Of a DNA stretch of 64,000 bases, positions 2,164 through 58,616 are shown piece after piece. The stretch lies in the sequence record NC_049851.1. One strand, 5' to 3'. The position numbers and the translations under genes were made by a program. Numbering within the stretch: position 1 is the stretch's first letter; every line of letters starts with the position of its first letter. The notes beneath the pieces are model-generated. The model did no database searches. It had not been told where the DNA came from and was given only the letters and a program-made list of their open reading frames with translations.

Positions 2164-3630
2164 TTACAGCACGATCAGGTCAGTGTTGTGCGCGTAAGGC
2201 TGCGCAAACCGCTTTGCCAGTTCGGCCCCGGCTTCGGCCGCCGCACGCACCTCACTGAACGTCTGCTCGTTGAACAGCTTGCCGTCTTCGTAGACAGTGC
2301 GCAGGATGTTTTCCCGAGCCCCGAGTTCCGACGACTGAATGACTTCGAGGATGCCGCTCTCGTTGCGGACCACCGCGAGGTGCCCCTTGAGCGACTTCTT
2401 CGACGACGCAGTGATCGGGTCCTTCATAATCCCGGTCCATGCCTCGCGGCCATTCGTGACAGCACTTGCCTTCTGGGCGTGACCCAGTACATCCCGGTTG
2501 GTGGCTTGAAGCAGTGCGCCACCCATGCCGAATGCTACGTTCTCGGCACTGAACCCATGGAGTTCGAGGGCCCGCAGAATCGCGATGATCGAATCACGGT
2601 TCACACCGTCACCCTGAATCACACGCACGCTCGGATGGAGCACCTTGAAGCCCTTGCTGTTGGTCGTCGTCCCGAAGCTTGCGGCCAGCGACTTGACGCA
2701 GTACAGCACCACGGAAACCGGGTCTCCCGAGTCCGGGCGAATGACGACACGCCCACCCTTCGACAAGACCTTCTCCTTCAACTGCTTGCCCCAGATGTTG
2801 TCGACAGCATTGTAGATGTCGTATGCATCCGAGACGCAGGCATACACGCGCCCTTCCCCACCGAACTTGTCGATCATGTTCGAGTAGGCGTCGGCTTCGC
2901 GGTCGCGACCCCACGAAGTCACCGTGAAGTGCTCCATGGCCGGGATCGAGAAACCAGCGGCAGTTTCGTCGTAGTAACGACGAGCCGCCACCAGTGCCGG
3001 AACCGTATCGGTCCCGAGGAAGTTCACGAGGTGGGCCATGCCACCCAGTGCTGCCGTTTGCACCGACGATGCGCCACGTGCTCCGAAGTCGTGCAGCATA
3101 AACTTAACTGCGGACTCAGGATCGTCACACGTGCGGTTGAGAAACGCGCGCAGGTCCTGCTTGATGTGCCACGAGAGCGTTGCGACAGCCGTTGCGTACC
3201 ATACAGCGCGCAACAGTCGCGTCTCCATGAACTGACCGAGTTCTGCGAGTCCCGGAGCCGTGTTCCGCACTTGGTAATACGGGACGTGGTTCGGGACGAG
3301 CGTACCCTCGGGCAGAGCCGAAATGCTCACGGGCGGAAGACCACCGTGCTCGTTGACGATACGCATGAACTGCTCGTACGGGAACGTTCCCGAGTGAGCC
3401 ATCGCGATATCACGAGCCTCTTCTACTTGTTCGCGCGTCAGCGGGTTTGCCACGATATTCCGCAACTCTGCCTGAAGGCCGAAGAAGATGGAAGCGCGGT
3501 ATTCCTTGTCCGACCGTGCCGAGCAGTACGACGATGCGAACTGGACTCCGGCCGGAAGCTGCTCCGAATGGCTCCATTTGTAGCTGTCGGTGTCGAGCGC
3601 GAACGAGATAGCGAGATTGGTATTTTCCAT
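2164..3630 (-). CDS. nadV: nicotinamide phosphoribosyltransferase (NAMPT)
   Basis: Motifs DTDSYKWSH, HDFGARG, SIPAMEH, VSDAYD, IRPDSGDP, VIQGDG, FGMGGALLQ; start set at ATG 3630 behind GGAG. Confidence 0.95.
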   Translation of the reverse strand: MENTNLAISFALDTDSYKWSHSEQLPAGVQFASSYCSARSDKEYRASIFFGLQAELRNIVANPLTREQVEEARDIAMAHSGTFPYEQFMRIVNEHGGLPPVSISALPEGTLVPNHVPYYQVRNTAPGLAELGQFMETRLLRAVWYATAVATLSWHIKQDLRAFLNRTCDDPESAVKFMLHDFGARGASSVQTAALGGMAHLVNFLGTDTVPALVAARRYYDETAAGFSIPAMEHFTVTSWGRDREADAYSNMIDKFGGEGRVYACVSDAYDIYNAVDNIWGKQLKEKVLSKGGRVVIRPDSGDPVSVVLYCVKSLAASFGTTTNSKGFKVLHPSVRVIQGDGVNRDSIIAILRALELHGFSAENVAFGMGGALLQATNRDVLGHAQKASAVTNGREAWTGIMKDPITASSKKSLKGHLAVVRNESGILEVIQSSELGARENILRTVYEDGKLFNEQTFSEVRAAAEAGAELAKRFAQPYAHNTDLIVL

Positions 3631-4081: not shown

Positions 4082-5188
4082 TTAATCGACAGGGATGAGA
4101 TCGATCATCTTCTGGACGATGAAGAAGTGGTCGCTGTACATTTCCTTCGGGTCCAGCAGGCCGAGCGGCACCCACCGAACTTCCGCGAAGTCGTCGTCGG
4201 CCTTCACCTCGATCAGCTTCTCTGCGTCGTTCAGCAGGTACAGGTAGGCGTGCGTGACGATACGACCACGCGTCTCGCCACGGTTCGGGTCCGAGAACAC
4301 ATGCTTGAATCGGAAAGCCAGCTTCATCGTGTCACGGCTCACCCGAATGCACGTCTCTTCGACAGCTTCACGGCACGAAGTGTTGAAGATGGTTTCGCCT
4401 GCGTGGGCAAACCCACCCGGCAGCGCCCACAGGCCCTTGCCCGGATTGAACTTGCGTCGCCCCAGCAGAACGTGGCCACTCTGGATGATCACCGAGTCTG
4501 CCGTCGTCATGATCGGCGCGTAGCTCTTGCCCTTGCCATCGCGACCACGGTAGCCGTGCTCTTCCAGATACTCCTTCGAGAACTTGATCTCGGCGTTGAG
4601 CGCGTCGATCACGTCGAGGTGTGCCCAGCCCCAGTGTTTGAGATAGGATTTCACTTCCGGATGCACGAGTTCCGTGATATCCGTGATGCCCTGTTCCCAA
4701 CACTGACCGCCACCGAACAACAGGTTGCGGACCGTCGTTGCGTCCAGCACTTCTCCGTTGACATTGAAACTGTTGACGCAGCGCGAATCCCACTGCGGGA
4801 ACTTCTTCAGGTAGTAGGACGAGTCGTCCTTCGAGTGGCCGATCAATCGGACCTCGACCTCGTGACCGCCAGCCCGAATCATCTGCACGTAGCGGTCGAC
4901 CTCGCGATGCACGGCCGCCATCCACTTGAAGTCGTTCTCGTGGAGGAAGTCGTCCAGCGTTTCGAACGCGATCTTGCTCACATTCTCCTGCTCACCATAG
5001 ACGGCGCGAAGCATGTCGATCACTTCGCATGCGGTCCACGGATTCTTGACGGTGCGCGGACGGTTTGCCGAGCCCACCAGAACCAACGTCAGGTCCGAGA
5101 TCGCAAGACTCGTATCGATGATCTGCTGGTGGCCGAGGTGGAGAGGGCGAAAGCGGCCGATGAAGACCGAAAGTTTCTTGATGCTCAT
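4082..5188 (-). CDS. nadM: bifunctional NMN adenylyltransferase / ADP-ribose Nudix hydrolase (NadM-Nudix)
   Basis: FIGRFRPLHLGH (HxGH), GSAN, KNPWT; Nudix box GGFAHAGETIFNTSCREAVEET. Confidence 0.93.
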   Translation of the reverse strand: MSIKKLSVFIGRFRPLHLGHQQIIDTSLAISDLTLVLVGSANRPRTVKNPWTACEVIDMLRAVYGEQENVSKIAFETLDDFLHENDFKWMAAVHREVDRYVQMIRAGGHEVEVRLIGHSKDDSSYYLKKFPQWDSRCVNSFNVNGEVLDATTVRNLLFGGGQCWEQGITDITELVHPEVKSYLKHWGWAHLDVIDALNAEIKFSKEYLEEHGYRGRDGKGKSYAPIMTTADSVIIQSGHVLLGRRKFNPGKGLWALPGGFAHAGETIFNTSCREAVEETCIRVSRDTMKLAFRFKHVFSDPNRGETRGRIVTHAYLYLLNDAEKLIEVKADDDFAEVRWVPLGLLDPKEMYSDHFFIVQKMIDLIPVD

Positions 5189-25411: not shown

Positions 25412-26530
25412 TTACTCGCCCGTCTTGAGCAAATACGAATTCGAAATCGCCTTAAAGCTGAAACCCGACTCCGCATGCTTGTAAACCTTGCCTTCAGCGG
25501 GCTTGCCGTTGATGCCCTTGTGCTCGGCGCGTGCCAGCAGATCGGCCTTCGTCTTCGCGATGTCGTACAGGCGGAAGTGGCCACCGACCGGAACGTGCTT
25601 GATGCCGAGTTCCTGAGCCAGATGCTCGACCTGAACCGGCGTCAGGTATTCCTGCGCGTCAATGTCCCACACGTCGTACAGGAAGAACGCGTGCGTGTCT
25701 GCCGGGAAGCCTTCGAAGTTCGACTGGATCGACGAACCGCACATTTCACCTTGAAGCGCGAGCGAGCGGCCGAGTGCTGCCGTCTTCTCCAGAAGTTGCT
25801 CCTGACGCGCAATGCGCCAGAACATGTTGTCTTCGGTCTCGACGAGATCGAGGTTGCGCGAGCACACGCTTTGCACGAGTTCCGGAAGCGCACCGTTTTC
25901 GTCAGCCTTTGCAAAACCAGCAAAGTACGGGCTGCTCGGAAGCAGAGTGTACGCGGTCAGCGACGAGCCGTCCATCTTCGTCGTTTCTTGGAAGACCTCT
26001 TCGCCCCACTTCTCGAACAGATCGCGGATGTTCTGCACGCGCTCCTGATCGGTCTTCGGGATGAAGTGCGGGAAGTTGCCGCGTGCGGTGCCGCGCAGGT
26101 TCGCGGGCAGCACCTTTTCCCACTTGACGATGCCCAGCGTTTCCGTCAGATCGACTTCAGCGATCTGCTCGTCGGTCAGGTCGGCCGCGCGATACGTCTT
26201 GTCCTCGACGCTGAAGTCGCTCAGTTCGGGGTACAGCGACAGCGGGAGCAGCAGGCCCTGCGAGAGTTGGCCTTTCAGCTTCATCGACTTGATGCGGGCA
26301 CCGCGCTTGCCCTCGAACGTGATGAAGCGCGGTTCGAGGAACGCATAGCGCTCGTCGTCGGCCGACAGGAACGAGTCGATTTCGAAATAGACGCCGATAT
26401 CGCCCACCTTGAATTCACCCTTCTTGACGACGCATTGCCAGCCGTCGATGAGGGCGAGTTCGATGAGATCGGCACCCGTGATCGGTTCGAGTGCGGTGAC
26501 GCGACGGAACGTTGCGAGTTTGCGAGTCAT
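25412..26530 (-). CDS. ATP-dependent RNA ligase, DRB0094 family
   Basis: RKLAT...I.GAD.IE...IDGWQCVVKKGEFKVGD..VYFEIDSFL; motif I TKMDGSS; QGE; EGKVYK; FKAISN.YLLK. Confidence 0.88.
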   Translation of the reverse strand: MTRKLATFRRVTALEPITGADLIELALIDGWQCVVKKGEFKVGDIGVYFEIDSFLSADDERYAFLEPRFITFEGKRGARIKSMKLKGQLSQGLLLPLSLYPELSDFSVEDKTYRAADLTDEQIAEVDLTETLGIVKWEKVLPANLRGTARGNFPHFIPKTDQERVQNIRDLFEKWGEEVFQETTKMDGSSLTAYTLLPSSPYFAGFAKADENGALPELVQSVCSRNLDLVETEDNMFWRIARQEQLLEKTAALGRSLALQGEMCGSSIQSNFEGFPADTHAFFLYDVWDIDAQEYLTPVQVEHLAQELGIKHVPVGGHFRLYDIAKTKADLLARAEHKGINGKPAEGKVYKHAESGFSFKAISNSYLLKTGE

Positions 26531-53487: not shown

Positions 53488-53516
53488 TTGACGGTGTAGT
53501 AAAGACAGCGTATAGT
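53488..53516 (+). promoter_or_regulatory. composite promoter for the tRNA cluster
   Basis: TTGACG-17-TATAGT with GTAGTAAAGA inside the spacer. Confidence 0.75.
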
Positions 53517-53525
53517 TCAGGACTC

Positions 53526-53602
53526 GGGCGGTTAGCTCAGGGGTTAGCAGCGTTCGGCTCATAACCGAGGGGTCGCGGGTTCGAATCCCGCACCGCCCAC
53601 CA
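53526..53602 (+). tRNA. tRNA-CAU (Met, or Ile2 if lysidine-modified)
   Basis: Cloverleaf; TTCGG-CT-CAT-AA-CCGAG; TTCGAAT; encoded CCA. Confidence 0.9.
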
Positions 53603-53658
53603 CACAGAATAGGAGGCAATCATGAGTAGATTCTAGTGAACCAACTGGAGGTGTTCTC

Positions 53659-53946
53659 ATGAAAGCAAAAGCGTTTTACCATCGTGTTTGTAACTACGGC
53701 CCGGGCGGCTACCACTGCCCGTGCTGTGGTCCCGCACCGAGCATGCGTCGTAAGGAGCGTCAGCAACAACGACGCAAGTTCCATCGACTGCTTGACGTTC
53801 TGGACAAGTTTGACACCGAAGTCGAAATCGAATACGACAACCTCGTGCTCAACGATTTCGACGACGAGCGTCACGACTACTACAACGGCTGGGGCGGTGA
53901 TCCCAGCCTGCACGATGAGTGGAAGGATTGGAAGAAGGCAGCTTGA
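53659..53946 (+). CDS. hypothetical protein with CPCC motif
   Basis: RBS GGAGG. Confidence 0.6.
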   Translation: MKAKAFYHRVCNYGPGGYHCPCCGPAPSMRRKERQQQRRKFHRLLDVLDKFDTEVEIEYDNLVLNDFDDERHDYYNGWGGDPSLHDEWKDWKKAA

Positions 53947-54010
53947 CCGTACTGCACCGCAAAGCCTTAGATGCGGTGTGCCGCGAGAACGTGAGCGGTG
54001 CAGTGCACCT

Positions 54011-54096
54011 GCCCGGGTGGCGGAATTGCTAGACGCGACGGACTCAAAATCCGTTGGCCCTAGGCCGTGTGGGTTGGAGTCCCACCCCGGGCACCA
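54011..54096 (+). tRNA. tRNA-Leu(CAA) with C19/G56 elbow
   Basis: ACGGA-CT-CAA-AA-TCCGT, long variable arm, CCA. Confidence 0.9.
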
Positions 54097-54098
54097 TC

Positions 54099-54137
54099 GC
54101 GAGGGTGGCGAAATTGGTAGACGTGGCGAAATTGGTA
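54099..54137 (+). pseudogene. 5' fragment of a tRNA-Leu with a 15-nt direct duplication
   Basis: GCGAGGG-TG-GCGAAATTGGTAGACG; GTGGCGAAATTGGTA at 54105-54119 and 54123-54137. Confidence 0.8.
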
Positions 54138-54177
54138 ATCCCCAATTTTATTTCAGTAACCAACGTGGAGAAGATTC

Positions 54178-54888
54178 ATGCTAGAACTGAAAAACGACAT
54201 GCCGATTTTGGCCAAGAAGTTGTCCGGTGTGTATGGTCACGAGATTCGTATCATCGGGCCGTACGTGGACAAGAGAAACGGGCGTAAGCTCGTGGACATA
54301 AAGGGTGCGCCCCGTTCCTCGGGAATTAACAAAACCGTGCAGCTTGCACGTGCGCGCCTAGAAGTAAAGCTTGGTCGACGCCTTGTCGATGACGAGACTG
54401 TCGACCACAAGAACAACGATTGCACGGATGACCGTCCGAGCAATCTTCAGTTGCTGACGCACGCAGAGAACTCGGCAAAGCAGACGAAGGAAACGCGTAG
54501 TCGCTCGGCTGAAGCGTCTCGCACCGCCGAGGCGCGTTCCGCTAACAGCAAACGCAATACAGGTGAGAAGAATCAAGCTGCCGTCCTTACCGATACTGAA
54601 GTGAAAAGGTTTCGCACACTTTTCAGTAAGGGTAAAATGACGGTCAAGCAAATCGAAGATGCGTCGGAGTTGACAAATCGTTCGGTTCGTAATATGCTTG
54701 ACGGCCTGTCGTACAAAACGGCAGGCGGACCGCTCCGCATAGCAGGCTCTGTTGGTCGCGCATCCTCGTTGTCAGAGAAGCACAGGCAGTACATAGCGAA
54801 TCACGCAGAACTGTCAGCCGCGCAGATTGCAGAAGAACTTGACGTGAGTAGGTATGCAGTGATACGATACCGACGCACGCTTAACTAA
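54178..54888 (+). mobile_element. HNH homing endonuclease
   Basis: LARARLEVKLGR.L...ETVDHKNND.TDDRPSNLQLLT.AEN plus a C-terminal HTH-like region. Confidence 0.85.
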
Positions 54889-54889
54889 C

Positions 54890-54976
54890 GGGAGTGTGCT
54901 GGAATTGGTAGACGGAACGGATTTAGATTCCGTAGGCCGCAAGGTCGTGTGGGTTCGAATCCCATCACTCCCACCA
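54890..54976 (+). tRNA. tRNA-Leu(TAG)
   Basis: ACGGA-TT-TAG-AT-TCCGT, variable arm, CCA. Confidence 0.92.
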
Positions 54977-55006
54977 CTACACGAAATTTTAGTTAAAGGT
55001 ATTTAA

Positions 55007-55246
55007 GTGCCGCCAAGCATCGAACAGGTAAAACTTATACTCAGATCAGCAGCATTGTCTCCGAGCAGCAGTCAGTTGTCTATTTCTGGCTTTGACGATA
55101 TCATGAAGGCAGCAGAGGAAGCCTATTGTGGAGATAGCCGAGCCATGCTCACAAACGTCCGGGAAATTGCCTTGCAGTTTCCGGACAATACGATGATGAT
55201 GACGATTTTGGCGCTGTATTCTGAATCCATGCTGAGTATGCATTAA
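55007..55246 (+). CDS. hypothetical protein (79 aa)
   Basis: GTG-start ORF, lower GC than the flanks. Confidence 0.45.
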   Translation: MPPSIEQVKLILRSAALSPSSSQLSISGFDDIMKAAEEAYCGDSRAMLTNVREIALQFPDNTMMMTILALYSESMLSMH

Positions 55247-55260
55247 GCGCAATCCCCACA

Positions 55261-55310
55261 GTCCTGCCGGTCGAAAGGCCGTGAGGGTTCGAATCCCTTT
55301 CCTCGCACCA
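55261..55310 (+). pseudogene. 3' fragment of a tRNA-Leu
   Basis: GT-CCTGC-C-GGTC-GAAA-GGCC-GT-GAGGG-TTCGAAT-CCCTT-TCCTCGC-ACCA; TCCTCGC pairs with GCGAGGG at 54099. Confidence 0.85.
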
Positions 55311-55404
55311 CTTTGGATTGTAGGCGTAAATCGAGCGGGACTTCCCCACCCACTCGATTAGGTATGGTACACCTTATAGACCGTCGCCTACAATCCAAAG
55401 TGGT
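55307..55404 (+). ncRNA. unknown structured RNA, 20-bp perfect closing stem
   Basis: ACCACTTTGGATTGTAGGCG (55307-55326) / CGCCTACAATCCAAAGTGGT (55385-55404), internal hairpin AATCGAG/CTCGATT. Confidence 0.55.
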
Positions 55405-55477
55405 TGTGGTAAAGATGTAGTGTGCTTTGCCTTTGAAGCGCGGGCGCTGTGGTTCTCAGGCCACGACAGCGCCCAAC

Positions 55478-55553
55478 GCCGGTTTAGCTCAGTTGGTAGA
55501 GCAGCGCCCTTGTAAAGCGCAGGTCACGGGTTCGAGCCCTGTAACCGGCACCA
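55478..55553 (+). tRNA. tRNA-Thr(TGT)
   Basis: GCGCC-CT-TGT-AA-AGCGC; CCA. Confidence 0.92.
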
Positions 55554-55574
55554 CTAAACAATAACAACGAGGTT

Positions 55575-56138
55575 GTGATGAATACGCATGAGGCTTACGA
55601 GATCGTCGATAGACTGACGCCGGTATCGGTCAGGAACCTCGAAGACGCGTACGTACGGTTCATGGAAATGGCGCTTCTGGTCGATCCACACCCGGAGACT
55701 GAAGACCGGGCCACACGGGATCGTGAGACATACACTGAATTCCTGCTACCGCCCGACGAGAACGGCAATCCCGTGATTTCGGTCCCGGGCATGCACCAGT
55801 TTCTGTCCAAGATCACGGGCCATCCACTACAAACCTGCGTAGCCTTCGACTATGTTGACTTCCATCGCGTGCACGGCACGACGGTAGAGGACGCGGAACT
55901 CGCTGGCTACGTTTAAGGACGGACCATGGAAGAAGACGCATACAGGTTCAGTGTGGCAGCGCTCAAAAGCGAGTACGACGCTGAACTGCTCGAACTGCGC
56001 AAGACAGTGCTTGAAGGTCGCGGTGACGTTGCTGGGTTTATCAAACTCAAGGAGTCGCTTGACTCAAGGCTGAAGGACCGCGTTAGCGCGGTTACTGGCG
56101 CACGCAGTCAAACACAGAACAAGTTGCTGTACAACTGA
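55575..56138 (+). other. hypothetical ORFs 55575-55916 and 55926-56138
   Basis: ORF track, RBSs. Confidence 0.6.
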
Positions 56139-56144
56139 ACAAGA

Positions 56145-56221
56145 CTCCGCTTAGCTCAGCCCGGTAGAGTACGTGATTTGGGATCACGGGGTCGCAGGTT
56201 CAAATCCTGTAGCGGAGACCA
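56145..56221 (+). tRNA. tRNA-Pro(TGG)
   Basis: CGTGA-TT-TGG-GA-TCACG; C1:G72, A73, CCA. Confidence 0.92.
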
Positions 56222-56239
56222 CACAACATAGGAGGTGTC

Positions 56240-57512
56240 TTGGAAACCACTTACGACTACAGCCTTACGTTCGACCTGACTGACATCATCGTGTTCGTTC
56301 TGATCGCGATCATGATCAAGATGGTCATCGACATCGTGCGTGAGCGCATGCGAATACGCAGGCTCCGACGCGACATGGGGGCAAACGGCAATCTTCCGTG
56401 CATCACGATCTCGGGTAACGACGATGTGTCGATCTCGGGTCTTGTGTACGAAGGGCGGCCCATCCCCTCGGTCGATATCAAGAACAAAGCGCTGTTCGTC
56501 GACGGTCAGTTCAAGCGCCGCCTCGCCCGCAACAGCCGTGTCTACAACCGTGGCATCGGAATCTTCGCGGACGGCAAGTACATGGGGTAATACCATGCGC
56601 AGTATCTTTCACATTTCGGTCGGCTCCGATAACTGGAACCCGACCGAGGACGAACTTGCGGGCATCGTCCGCAAGTTCAAAGAACTGGAAGCAAAGCAGG
56701 GTCAGCGTCAACAGCTTCCCGATACCCGCAAGATCATCCACATCAGTGTGGGTGCTGAGGATTGGACGCCTACCGCAGACGAACTGTTGGCCATCGTCAA
56801 TCAGTTCCAGTATGCAGACCTCGATCCGCTCGGTGGGTGGATTGCGACGCGTCACGGTATCAAAGTCACTGACATCGAGACCGCCGCACAGCCCACGCTG
56901 GTGGTGAACGGCACGACCCACGAAAGCGAGGCTCGTGCTTCGCTACGTCAGGACTCCATCGACCGGCTTGAGGCCATCCGCGAAAACCTGCGTACGTTCA
57001 AGCTGAGCACGCTCGATGTCGACACACTGATCAATCGGTTGTCGACGTATCAACTTTAACCGAAAAGCTTAGGACAACAAATGAAACAACTCAACACGCA
57101 ACGCCGCTTCGAATGCCTGACACCGGAAGGTACATGGGTCTCCGTGCACTGGGAGCAACTGGAACCGGGCGACATGATCCGCCTCCTGCCCGCTGTCGGC
57201 ATCACCGAGGACGTTCCGCCGACCGACGTATTCGTCGTCATGGACACGCCTACCGTGAACGTGCGTTCGGTGAACGAAATCCGTGCCGAACAAGCAGCCG
57301 CAGCGCAGCGTGAAGCGCTGGCCAACACGGAAGGTGTCGATGCTATCCAAGCAGCGCAGCGCGATATCGACGCAGCCGTCGAGCAGATGAAGCCGGTAAC
57401 AGAGGCCGTGGCAAAGGTGGCGCACGCAGTAAAGGCCAAGAAGACGCCGAGCCCGAAGGTTCCGGCACCGGCACGCAAGCCGCGCACGCGCAAGGTCGCG
57501 ACGCCGAAGTAA
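56240..57512 (+). other. hypothetical ORFs 56240-56590 (N-terminal TM), 56595-57059 (internal repeat), 57081-57512 (basic tail)
   Basis: ORF track, RBSs. Confidence 0.6.
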
Positions 57513-57624
57513 TGGCCGTGTAGTAAATAGGTTGGGTGAGCGCGGAAACGCAATCCCCAATTTGAGTTGTACAGAAAACTAGTGCTGGTTGCCGGATGCA
57601 GTTGTTACCCGGAACAGCACACGC

Positions 57625-57714
57625 GGATGGGTGCCCGAGTGGCTAAAGGGGGCAGACTGTAAATCTGCCGGGCCTCAGTGTCCTACGTTGGTTCGAATCC
57701 AACCTCATCCACCA
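57625..57714 (+). tRNA. tRNA-Tyr(GTA)
   Basis: GCAGA-CT-GTA-AA-TCTGC, long variable arm, CCA. Confidence 0.92.
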
Positions 57715-57767
57715 GAACATAAGCAGGAGCCCTGAGCATCAGGGCATCAGGGCAACAAGGAAAAGCA

Positions 57768-58049
57768 ATGCCGATTAAGCCGCTGTATGACAAGGTGGTG
57801 GTGCGTACCACCGACACAGACCGTACGACTGTAGGGGGCATCGTGATCCCCGCTGCTTCGCTCAAGGCGAATCAGGCTGTCGTGGTCGCTGTCGGTGACG
57901 GCCACCTTATGCAAGACGGTACGCTTCGACCGCTGTCCGTGAAGGCAGGCGACGTTGTGTACCTCTCGCATGAAGGCTCCGAGATCGAAGTCAACGGTGA
58001 AAAGCTTCGCGTCTTCATCGAAGGCGATCTGATAGGAGTCCTCAACTAA
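57768..58049 (+). CDS. groES: co-chaperonin GroES
   Basis: IKPLYDKVVV, GGIVIP, VVAVGDG, VKAGDVV, GSEIEVNGE. Confidence 0.92.
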   Translation: MPIKPLYDKVVVRTTDTDRTTVGGIVIPAASLKANQAVVVAVGDGHLMQDGTLRPLSVKAGDVVYLSHEGSEIEVNGEKLRVFIEGDLIGVLN

Positions 58050-58058
58050 GCAGTACAT

Positions 58059-58135
58059 TCCCCGTGAGCAAGCTAGGCGACTGCACCGGACTGTTAATCC
58101 GGCATTGCGTGGTTCGAATCCACGACGGGGAGCCA
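58059..58135 (+). tRNA. tRNA-Asn(GTT)
   Basis: CCGGA-CT-GTT-AA-TCCGG; CCA. Confidence 0.92.
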
Positions 58136-58139
58136 ATCA

Positions 58140-58242
58140 TGAATAGGTCATGAGTAAGGCAGATCACTCAATCCGGAAACTCAAAAGGTAATCCGGGTAG
58201 CAATGAGCATCCTGTAAGCCGAGACGATGATTGACTTATTCA
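58140..58242 (+). ncRNA. unknown structured spacer RNA
   Basis: Closing stem TGAATAGGTCA/TGACTTATTCA with internal hairpins TGAGT/ACTCA and CCGGA/TCCGG. Confidence 0.45.
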
Positions 58243-58244
58243 GA

Positions 58245-58320
58245 GCGCGGGTAGCTCAGTTGGTAGAGCACCGGACTGAAAATCCGGGTGTCGCTGGTTC
58301 GAGTCCAGCCCTGCGCACCA
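58245..58320 (+). tRNA. tRNA-Phe(GAA)
   Basis: CCGGA-CT-GAA-AA-TCCGG; CCA. Confidence 0.93.
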
Positions 58321-58322
58321 GC

Positions 58323-58438
58323 GTTGTGATCGAGTGAAAATCGTAGGAAGGGGCCGATTACCCTGACCGCAATCTGTAGGTGGACCGGCTGGCCCTCATC
58401 CTGCTAGTGTAGATTTTTCCCATGTGGTTTCGATCAAC
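58323..58438 (+). ncRNA. unknown rod-like RNA
   Basis: Nested stems TGATCGA/TCGATCA, GAAAATC/GATTTT, GTAGGA/TCCTGC, GGGGCC/GGCCCT separated by bulges. Confidence 0.45.
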
Positions 58439-58539
58439 TAATCATTGTGTGGTTGTAGCGCACTAAATCAGACGGCCGGGCTCCGGAGCCCGCGTACCAT
58501 ACCACCCCGGATGGAAACCGTTGAATATTCCGGGTCGAT

Positions 58540-58616
58540 AGGGGTGTAGCCAAGTTGGTTAAGGCAACGGATTTTGATTCCGTCATGCGTAGGTTCGAAT
58601 CCTACCGCCCCTTCCA
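58540..58616 (+). tRNA. tRNA-Gln(TTG)
   Basis: ACGGA-TT-TTG-AT-TCCGT; discriminator T; CCA. Confidence 0.9.

Follow-up and report, generated by a model that had tools for sequence, protein, structure and literature searches.

The tRNA-Leu(CAA) gene of Burkholderia phage BcepSauron has an inverted elbow, in which the G19:C56 pair that normally caps this part of the molecule is replaced by C19:G56. We consider it probable that the gene encodes a working, UUG-decoding tRNA-Leu whose tertiary pair was flipped and then re-compensated in a dispensable phage gene. C19:G56 is in these terms a rare working variant, and not a proven anti-defence device.

The tRNA-Leu(CAA) gene and its cluster

The window analysed here is a stretch of 64,000 nucleotides that matches bases 62001-126000 of the BcepSauron genome (MK552141.1) at 100% identity. 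The gene and its relevant positions are as follows.

54011..54096, + strand: tRNA-Leu(CAA), type II, 83 nt plus an encoded CCA (54094-54096); ARAGORN and Rfam RF00005
54029..54029, + strand: D-loop position 19, C where G is usual; sequence and Rfam alignment
54045..54047, + strand: anticodon CAA, reading the UUG codon, in the loop CUCAAAA; ARAGORN, anticodon at position 35
54076..54076, + strand: T-loop position 56, G where C is usual, the Watson-Crick partner of C19; sequence and Rfam alignment

A preliminary description of this DNA had identified a tRNA-Leu(CAA) with C19 at 54029 and G56 at 54076, and the sequence, ARAGORN and Rfam all bear this out. The gene scores 54.4 bits against RF00005 (gathering score 29), and in the Rfam alignment of both loops it departs from the consensus only at G19 and C56. 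Read directly, the D-loop is GAATTGCTAGA and the T-loop TTGGAGT (in RNA letters GAAUUGCUAGA and UUGGAGU). Apart from 19:56 the tRNA is canonical in every respect. Its stems (7-bp acceptor, GCCCGGG/CCCGGGC; 3-bp D; 5-bp anticodon; 4-bp variable-arm; 5-bp T, GUGGG/CCCAC) contain standard pairs throughout, and the variable region of 14 nt includes the 4-bp stem GGCC/GGCC. The anticodon loop has 7 nt with U33, a leucine anticodon and a purine at position 37, and the conserved core (U8, A14, G18, G53:C61, U54, U55, R57 and A58) is fully present. The discriminator is A73, the chief identity element for bacterial LeuRS, and is followed by the encoded CCA. In place of the usual G19:C56 tertiary pair there is an inverted C19:G56, which is still Watson-Crick. 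The minimum-energy fold is a rod-like non-cloverleaf structure (-42.5 kcal/mol, versus -38.2 kcal/mol for the cloverleaf), which we considered as a sign of non-function and rejected, since a G19:C56 revertant (-41.4 kcal/mol) and several normal neighbouring tRNAs do likewise in silico; the swap is therefore not the cause of the predicted alternative fold. In the ORFs of the window UUG makes up 14.6% of leucine codons (14.1 per 1000 codons), a usage that plausibly creates a demand for tRNA-Leu(CAA). The GC content of the window is 57.6%, against about 66% in the host.

The gene is the second of a cluster of nine tRNA genes, all of them missing from the annotation of BcepSauron and its sister phage BcepSaruman in both GenBank (MK552141, MK552140) and RefSeq. 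The surroundings of the gene contain the following features.

53488-53516: promoter-like site just upstream of tRNA-Met; consensus match only
53526..58616, + strand: cluster of nine tRNA genes (Met, Leu-CAA, Leu-TAG, Thr, Pro, Tyr, Asn, Phe, Gln) and small ORFs; ARAGORN, with 9/9 confirmed by Rfam RF00005
54099..54137, + strand: remnant of an ancestral tRNA-Leu(TAG), about 25 nt of the 5' part and then a 15-nt direct duplication; comparison with BcepSaruman
54105-54119 and 54123-54137: the two copies of the 15-nt direct duplication (repeat family D1)
54178..54888, + strand: HNH endonuclease BcepSauron_205, HNH_3 plus HTH; annotation, Pfam PF13392 and PF08279
54890..54976, + strand: a different tRNA-Leu(TAG), with a normal elbow, directly after the HNH gene; ARAGORN and Rfam

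As first described, the other tRNAs of the window (8/8, from the Rfam alignments) retain GG and TTC. The preliminary description had also called for relatives to be examined for both changes, and BcepSaruman (MK552140.1) carries both in a gene that is identical at 86/86 positions (L002 3025-3110). The block flanking the gene is 93.4% identical between the two phages; at this divergence (about 6.6%) the chance of finding no difference in 86 nt is P about 0.003. An identical gene in a separately sequenced phage, within diverged flanks, rules out an assembly error as the source of C19 and G56, and the comparison suggests that tRNA-Leu(CAA) is under purifying selection.

The tRNA cluster turns over rapidly between the sister phages. 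The Leu(CAA) and Thr tRNAs are identical, Met (53526-53602), Pro and Tyr match at 58/77, 71/77 and 82/90 positions respectively, and tRNA-Asn and tRNA-Leu(TAG) have been replaced. In BcepSaruman an intact tRNA-Leu(TAG) (L002 3113-3199) begins 2 nt after tRNA-Leu(CAA), at the place where BcepSauron has the remnant. The HNH gene has been inserted beside tRNA-Leu(CAA) in BcepSauron and is missing from BcepSaruman, and the tRNA-Leu(TAG) that follows it (54890-54976) matches that of BcepSaruman at 63/87 bases; together the two look like a homing endonuclease that carries its own replacement tRNA. At position 8 the tRNA-Asn of BcepSauron (58059-58135) carries G in place of U; its D stem is mismatched, and its Rfam score of 43.3 bits is the lowest of the nine. 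In the leader, a perfect 10-bp inverted repeat (53951-53960, ACTGCACCGC; 53995-54004, GCGGTGCAGT; arms 34 nt apart) ends 6 nt upstream of tRNA-Leu(CAA), and its second arm is mostly retained in BcepSaruman. Elsewhere BcepSauron encodes an RNA ligase (25412-26530, - strand; PF09414 and a PHA02142 OB domain) and an NAD salvage pair consisting of a NAMPT-type phosphoribosyltransferase and an NMN adenylyltransferase-Nudix fusion (2164-3630 and 4082-5188, both - strand). Such genes have been associated with RNA repair and with resistance to defences that deplete NAD.

Variation of the 19:56 pair in phage and cellular tRNAs

A lone complementary double change is little proof of anything, and the weight of the argument comes from wider covariation. 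A search of 2.9 million viral contigs for a Leu-type D-arm with C19 together with a T-loop with G56 returned 25 stretches, all but two with a tRNA at the match. When the pattern was widened to any non-G19 with any non-C56, we obtained 38 distinct Leu-type tRNAs (19 C:G, 16 A:U and 3 U:A), and none of the 38 had any of the six possible mismatched or wobble combinations; 38/38 Watson-Crick pairs would arise with P about 1.6e-14 under independence. A further viral scan with a type I D-arm pattern and any non-G19 gave, among the matches listed, at least 57 A19:U56, at least seven U19:A56, at least one C19:G56 and at least six apparent mismatches, so that 65/71 of the variants among these matches are Watson-Crick. 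The apparent mismatches listed (A19:C56 twice, U19:C56 four times) may be intermediates or D-loop register shifts. In an alignment of 91 sequences (A2; position 19 is column 20 and position 56 is column 75), 98.9% are paired at these positions (CG 46, GC 31, AU 10, UA 3, other 1), in proportions that are not population frequencies because the alignment was gathered for variants. Across relatives, then, it is pairing at 19:56 that covaries, and not base identity.

The preliminary description had called G19:C56 near-universal. This is overstated, in that phage tRNAs include a sizeable natural minority of A:U, U:A and C:G pairs and C:G pairs also occur in Patescibacteria tRNA-Leu. The minority is nevertheless bounded: in an unselected sample of 104 chance-hit viral loci (875 kb, 66 distinct parsed tRNAs), C56 was present in 66/66, which places non-C56 variants below about 4.4% of phage tRNAs.

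The kind of substitution depends on the kind of tRNA. C:G and A:U number 19 and 16 in Leu-type tRNAs but 1 and 57 in type I tRNAs among the matches listed (Fisher p = 2e-9, with the same restriction), which makes C:G about 57-fold rarer than A:U in those type I matches. A:U can be reached from G:C through a G:U wobble, while the change from G:C to C:G takes two transversions with no wobble intermediate. C:G is therefore expected to be the rarest compensated outcome, and something specific to tRNA-Leu favours it. The A19:U56 and U19:A56 phage tRNAs are like the BcepSauron gene in that 19:56 varies yet stays Watson-Crick; they differ in that A:U dominates the type I variants (57/71 among the matches listed) and C:G is nearly confined to Leu-type tRNAs.

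Some phage genomes contain several such tRNAs. In L060 (3808-7492; IMGVR_UViG_3300043788_000060), 8/21 tRNAs have a non-G:C 19:56 pair (five C:G, two A:U, one U:A), and in L051 (717-1607) three of five are elbow variants (Leu-TAG, Leu-TAA and Thr-TGT); all of the variant pairs in the two are Watson-Crick. Such clustering within genomes looks more like avoidance of C56 than like independent drift.

Several other observations came from the same material. The exact D-arm 15-mer GGAATTGCTAGACGC has 44 matches in viral contigs, and we rejected all except BcepSauron itself as chance occurrences within coding sequence. BLAST of flipped tRNAs against cultured phages gave no match for L072 and only generic tRNA matches for the L051 cluster. 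A second elbow variant has a T-loop that begins UGC (G55 for U55) and a D-loop with AG for GG (A18), which looks like covariation of the 18:55 contact. Its carriers are tRNA-Cys and tRNA-Gly genes of Patescibacteria and several tRNAs on phage contigs rich in tRNA genes (L082 3255-3330, L091 5201-5273, L100 7067-7139, L096 965-1039, L125 2603-2677, L131 3033-3107, L064 6200-6284, 8561-8636 and 11296-11379, and L092 806-881). There are also Leu-shaped tRNAs with long variable arms and the anticodons of His (GTG), Gln (TTG) or Asn (GTT) (L274 534-618, L275 5774-5860, L315 4090-4176, L292 1617-1701, L296 720-801, L314 7386-7474); their discriminators are C73 with His anticodons and G73 with Gln and Asn anticodons, and their 19:56 pairs are A19:U56 or U19:A56.

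A search of 185,579 genomes, one per species, with the C19/G56 Leu pattern used for viruses gave 65 stretches, 35 of them real tRNA-Leu genes (about 35 species). These are mostly tRNA-Leu(UAA) or (CAA) of Patescibacteria, with a few from Actinomycetota MAGs. The Patescibacteria lineages represented are many and include Parcubacteria, Saccharibacteria and Doudna-, Komeili- and Nealsonbacteria (L080-L144; for example L143 5437-5520, L138 108-192 and L094 1328-1412), and the remaining Leu isoacceptors at those loci have a normal elbow. The flipped genes often adjoin tRNA-Cys or tRNA-Gly and housekeeping genes (that of L143 lies beside queA and ruvB), and a C19:G56 tRNA-Leu(CAG) on the chromosome of a Rubrivivax (Burkholderiales) MAG (L118 218-302) has xanthine phosphoribosyltransferase, hisZ and hflX as neighbours. 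Since C19:G56 genes sit among chromosomal housekeeping genes, the flipped elbow works with normal cellular machinery. Two further MAG bins (L092, L107) contain flipped genes within multi-tRNA arrays; the 17-tRNA array of L092 has the appearance of a phage array. The flipped Leu pattern had no match in Burkholderia among the 185,579 species representatives. The tRNA-Leu(CAA) of Ralstonia, our Burkholderiaceae proxy for the host, has the acceptor stem, A73 and CCA of the phage gene together with a normal GG and UUCGAGU, and thus differs from it at 19 and 56. To judge from these genomes, the flip is foreign to the lineage of BcepSauron's host.

Origin of the inversion and competing explanations

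Comparison with close relatives indicates that the flip in the BcepSauron gene probably arose independently on a canonical scaffold. We searched JGI metagenomes with an elbow-neutral 22-mer comprising the anticodon arm and the start of the variable arm, and recovered ten tRNA-Leu(CAA) genes, all with a normal elbow (10/10). L147 and L148, two of the ten, come from a cellular contig that also carries ispH and a gene for a dipeptidase. They have the D, anticodon and T stems of the BcepSauron gene and the same acceptor stem except at base 72; outside the variable arm they differ from it only at 19, 56 and 72, and it is this that makes an independent origin probable. With 19, 56 and the D-loop masked, the nearest sequence is the normal-elbow L147 (96% over 76 columns) and the second nearest is L146.

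Our favoured explanation builds on this origin. It supposes that translation needs pairing at 19:56 and not the identity of either base, in which case a tRNA whose G19:C56 cap is inverted to C19:G56 would still fold into the L-shape, be leucylated by the LeuRS of the host and serve on the ribosome. The host supplies a tRNA-Leu(CAA) itself, which would make the phage gene dispensable, and a dispensable gene would allow the phage to cross a fitness valley. The gene could first tolerate a single transversion at 19 or 56 that disabled it and then regain function through a compensating change at the other position, after which purifying selection would have held it. We infer in this account the expression of the gene, its charging in Burkholderia, the order of events and the near-neutrality of the flip. 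Published mutagenesis fits 19:56 covariation. In Aquifex aeolicus tRNALeu, G19C left no measurable leucylation, while the G19U:C56A double mutant was restored to about half (PMC2377443); in E. coli tRNALeu, G19C/C56G left charging unchanged, according to the citation of Du and Wang (2003) in PMC3602588. The preliminary description had argued that the two changes are complementary and are kept by selection rather than decay, and conservation in the sister phage, covariation at 19:56 and this mutagenesis all agree with it. Some features sit uneasily with pure drift, namely that C:G is as common as A:U in Leu-type tRNAs although it has no wobble route, and that variants cluster within genomes.

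The preliminary description had inferred escape from an elbow-reading host nuclease or modification. Escape from a nuclease that reads the T-loop or elbow is plausible, although nothing at the locus bears it out and we judge it unlikely as the cause here. The UUG T-loop would evade a host nuclease or other enzyme that reads C56 or the G19:C56 face, C19 would compensate, and the phage would keep a UUG decoder while the host tRNA-Leu(CAA) is attacked. Enzymes with suitable properties exist. The CRISPR-associated Schlafen nuclease CbCash cuts tRNAs 5' of U55 at a UUC/UC motif, and its authors left open whether phage tRNAs are among its targets (PMC13462974); the CDI toxin CdiA-CT E479 of B. pseudomallei cuts the T-loop (PMC9086364); and C56G, unlike G19C, blocks plant PRORP1 (PMC5039416), so proteins can read C56 itself. 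Loop mutations are known to let phage tRNAs evade anticodon nucleases (eLife, 2023, PMC10264068). In addition, non-C56 tRNAs (with G, A or U) are clustered within L051 and L060, BcepSauron encodes counter-defence-type genes in its RNA ligase and NAD salvage pair, and, with no match to the flipped pattern in the Burkholderia genomes searched and a normal elbow in the Ralstonia proxy, the flip would distinguish the phage tRNA from those of the host. Against this, just one of the nine cluster tRNAs is changed and 8/9 keep UUC, so a general T-loop nuclease cannot be the driver in BcepSauron, while no elbow-reading nuclease specific for tRNA-Leu(CAA) is known and our analysis tied no factor to BcepSauron or its host. 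Most elbow readers, among them RNase P RNA, the L1 stalk and T-boxes, contact the pair by stacking against its flat face and do not read the bases (PMC4810234). The flip is also fixed in many chromosomal tRNA-Leu genes of Patescibacteria, where evading a phage-defence nuclease offers no obvious motive, and C56 is kept throughout the unselected phage sample (66/66).

More doubtful still is a general form of the same idea, in which phage tRNAs with G, A or U at 56 and a matched base at 19 make up a T-loop 'immune' class, protected against nucleases that cut at UUC or read G19:C56. Their foes would be Schlafen/Cash-type enzymes and T-loop-cutting toxins, and the BcepSauron tRNA-Leu(CAA) would be one member. 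The preference of tRNA-Leu for C:G would follow from its keeping a three-hydrogen-bond pair, needed for LeuRS-dependent charging.

The flip might instead have been inherited, by horizontal transfer from an old C19:G56 tRNA-Leu lineage now seen in Patescibacteria and many phages, with a later change of anticodon from UAA to CAA. The BcepSauron gene is 87-89% identical to the flipped tRNA-Leu(UAA) genes of Patescibacteria L143 and L138 and shares their acceptor stem and the T-loop TTGGAGT; C:G is strongly associated with Leu-type tRNAs; and sequences with G56 group together on the tree (22 changes of state, versus a shuffled mean of 39). We nevertheless find this origin improbable. L143 and L138 rank after the normal-elbow L147 and L146 in the masked comparison, and the D, anticodon and T stems of the Patescibacteria tRNAs carry compensated changes relative to the phage gene. 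On a tree that is built from 77 columns and weakly resolved, the nearest masked relatives are thus not flipped themselves, as those of a member of an old C19:G56 lineage should be. Well-supported branches of that tree require the position-56 state to have changed four times or more, which calls for several origins in any case.

We give a very low probability to altered handling of the tRNA, in which the flip would tune decoding speed or tRNA stability for phage mRNAs. Candidate effects are loss of Gm18 methylation by TrmH, altered action of TruB or TrmA, and changed stacking with the A-site finger, protein L5 or the L1 stalk. The last three do contact the 19:56 face (PMC4810234, PMC3602588), some T-loop modification enzymes use C56 as a determinant (PMC7912444), and disruption of the elbow makes TruB bind more tightly (PMC13492117); on the other side, no benefit is known, and the presence of the flip in bacterial chromosomes speaks for its being tolerated, not specialised. 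Finally, a decaying gene or sequencing artefact, which the missing annotation and the rapid turnover of the cluster might suggest, is hardly credible when all other conserved features are intact, the C19 and G56 changes are complementary and the gene is identical in an independently sequenced phage despite about 6.6% flank divergence.

Known relatives of the variant and its significance

The closest counterpart of the BcepSauron gene is an engineered one, E. coli tRNALeu G19C/C56G, which carries the identical swap (Du and Wang, 2003, Nucleic Acids Res 31:2865, as given in PMC3602588). Aquifex aeolicus tRNALeu G19U:C56A is similar in that the 19:56 pair of a tRNA-Leu is replaced by another Watson-Crick pair (PMC2377443). 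In both systems the double mutants retain leucylation and the single mutants lose it (PMC2377443, and for E. coli as cited in PMC3602588). These are laboratory constructs assayed in vitro, whereas the BcepSauron gene is natural, occurs in two phage genomes and is known from its sequence. Among natural genes, the C19:G56 tRNA-Leu(UAA/CAA) of Patescibacteria and other phages resemble it in having the flipped pair on a type II Leu body (87-89% identity), and they often share the T-loop TTGGAGT and the acceptor stem GCCCGGG. Most of them, however, have the anticodon UAA, and three of their stems differ from those of the BcepSauron gene by compensated changes; the host of BcepSauron, moreover, is a betaproteobacterium, and the relatives of that host have normal elbows. 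The phage tRNAs known to evade nucleases offer a third parallel, in that a phage copy of a host isoacceptor is altered at a conserved loop position (PMC10264068). Other evaders are T5 tRNA-Lys, which faces PARIS AriB, and T5 tRNA-Tyr, which faces retron-Eco7 PtuAB (both as named in PMC13462974). Those tRNAs are altered in the anticodon loop, the nuclease they counter has been identified, and they were shown to rescue infection, while in BcepSauron the change lies in the elbow and is read from the genome.

In the open-access literature we found no description of natural C19:G56 tRNA-Leu in Patescibacteria or phages; a search for a natural flipped C19-G56 gave one match, which concerned an ordinary A-site tRNA pair, and the literature searched contained no mention of A19-U56 or U19-A56. 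Elbow covariation across phage and Patescibacteria tRNAs is thus apparently an undescribed, broader pattern.

Taken alone, the BcepSauron locus is of modest significance, as an unannotated and apparently functional tRNA gene with a rare, tolerated inversion of a tertiary pair. The wider pattern outweighs it. A visible minority of phage tRNAs lacks the supposedly invariant G19:C56 pair, with C:G tied to tRNA-Leu and widespread in Patescibacteria chromosomes, and some phages have many non-C56 tRNAs. For tRNA finders and annotators, no penalty is warranted for genes with a flipped elbow. Natural elbow variants are also substrates for asking whether T-loop-cutting defence nucleases spare phage tRNAs, and they could serve to sort the many readers of the elbow into those that need the identity of the pair and those that need its shape alone.
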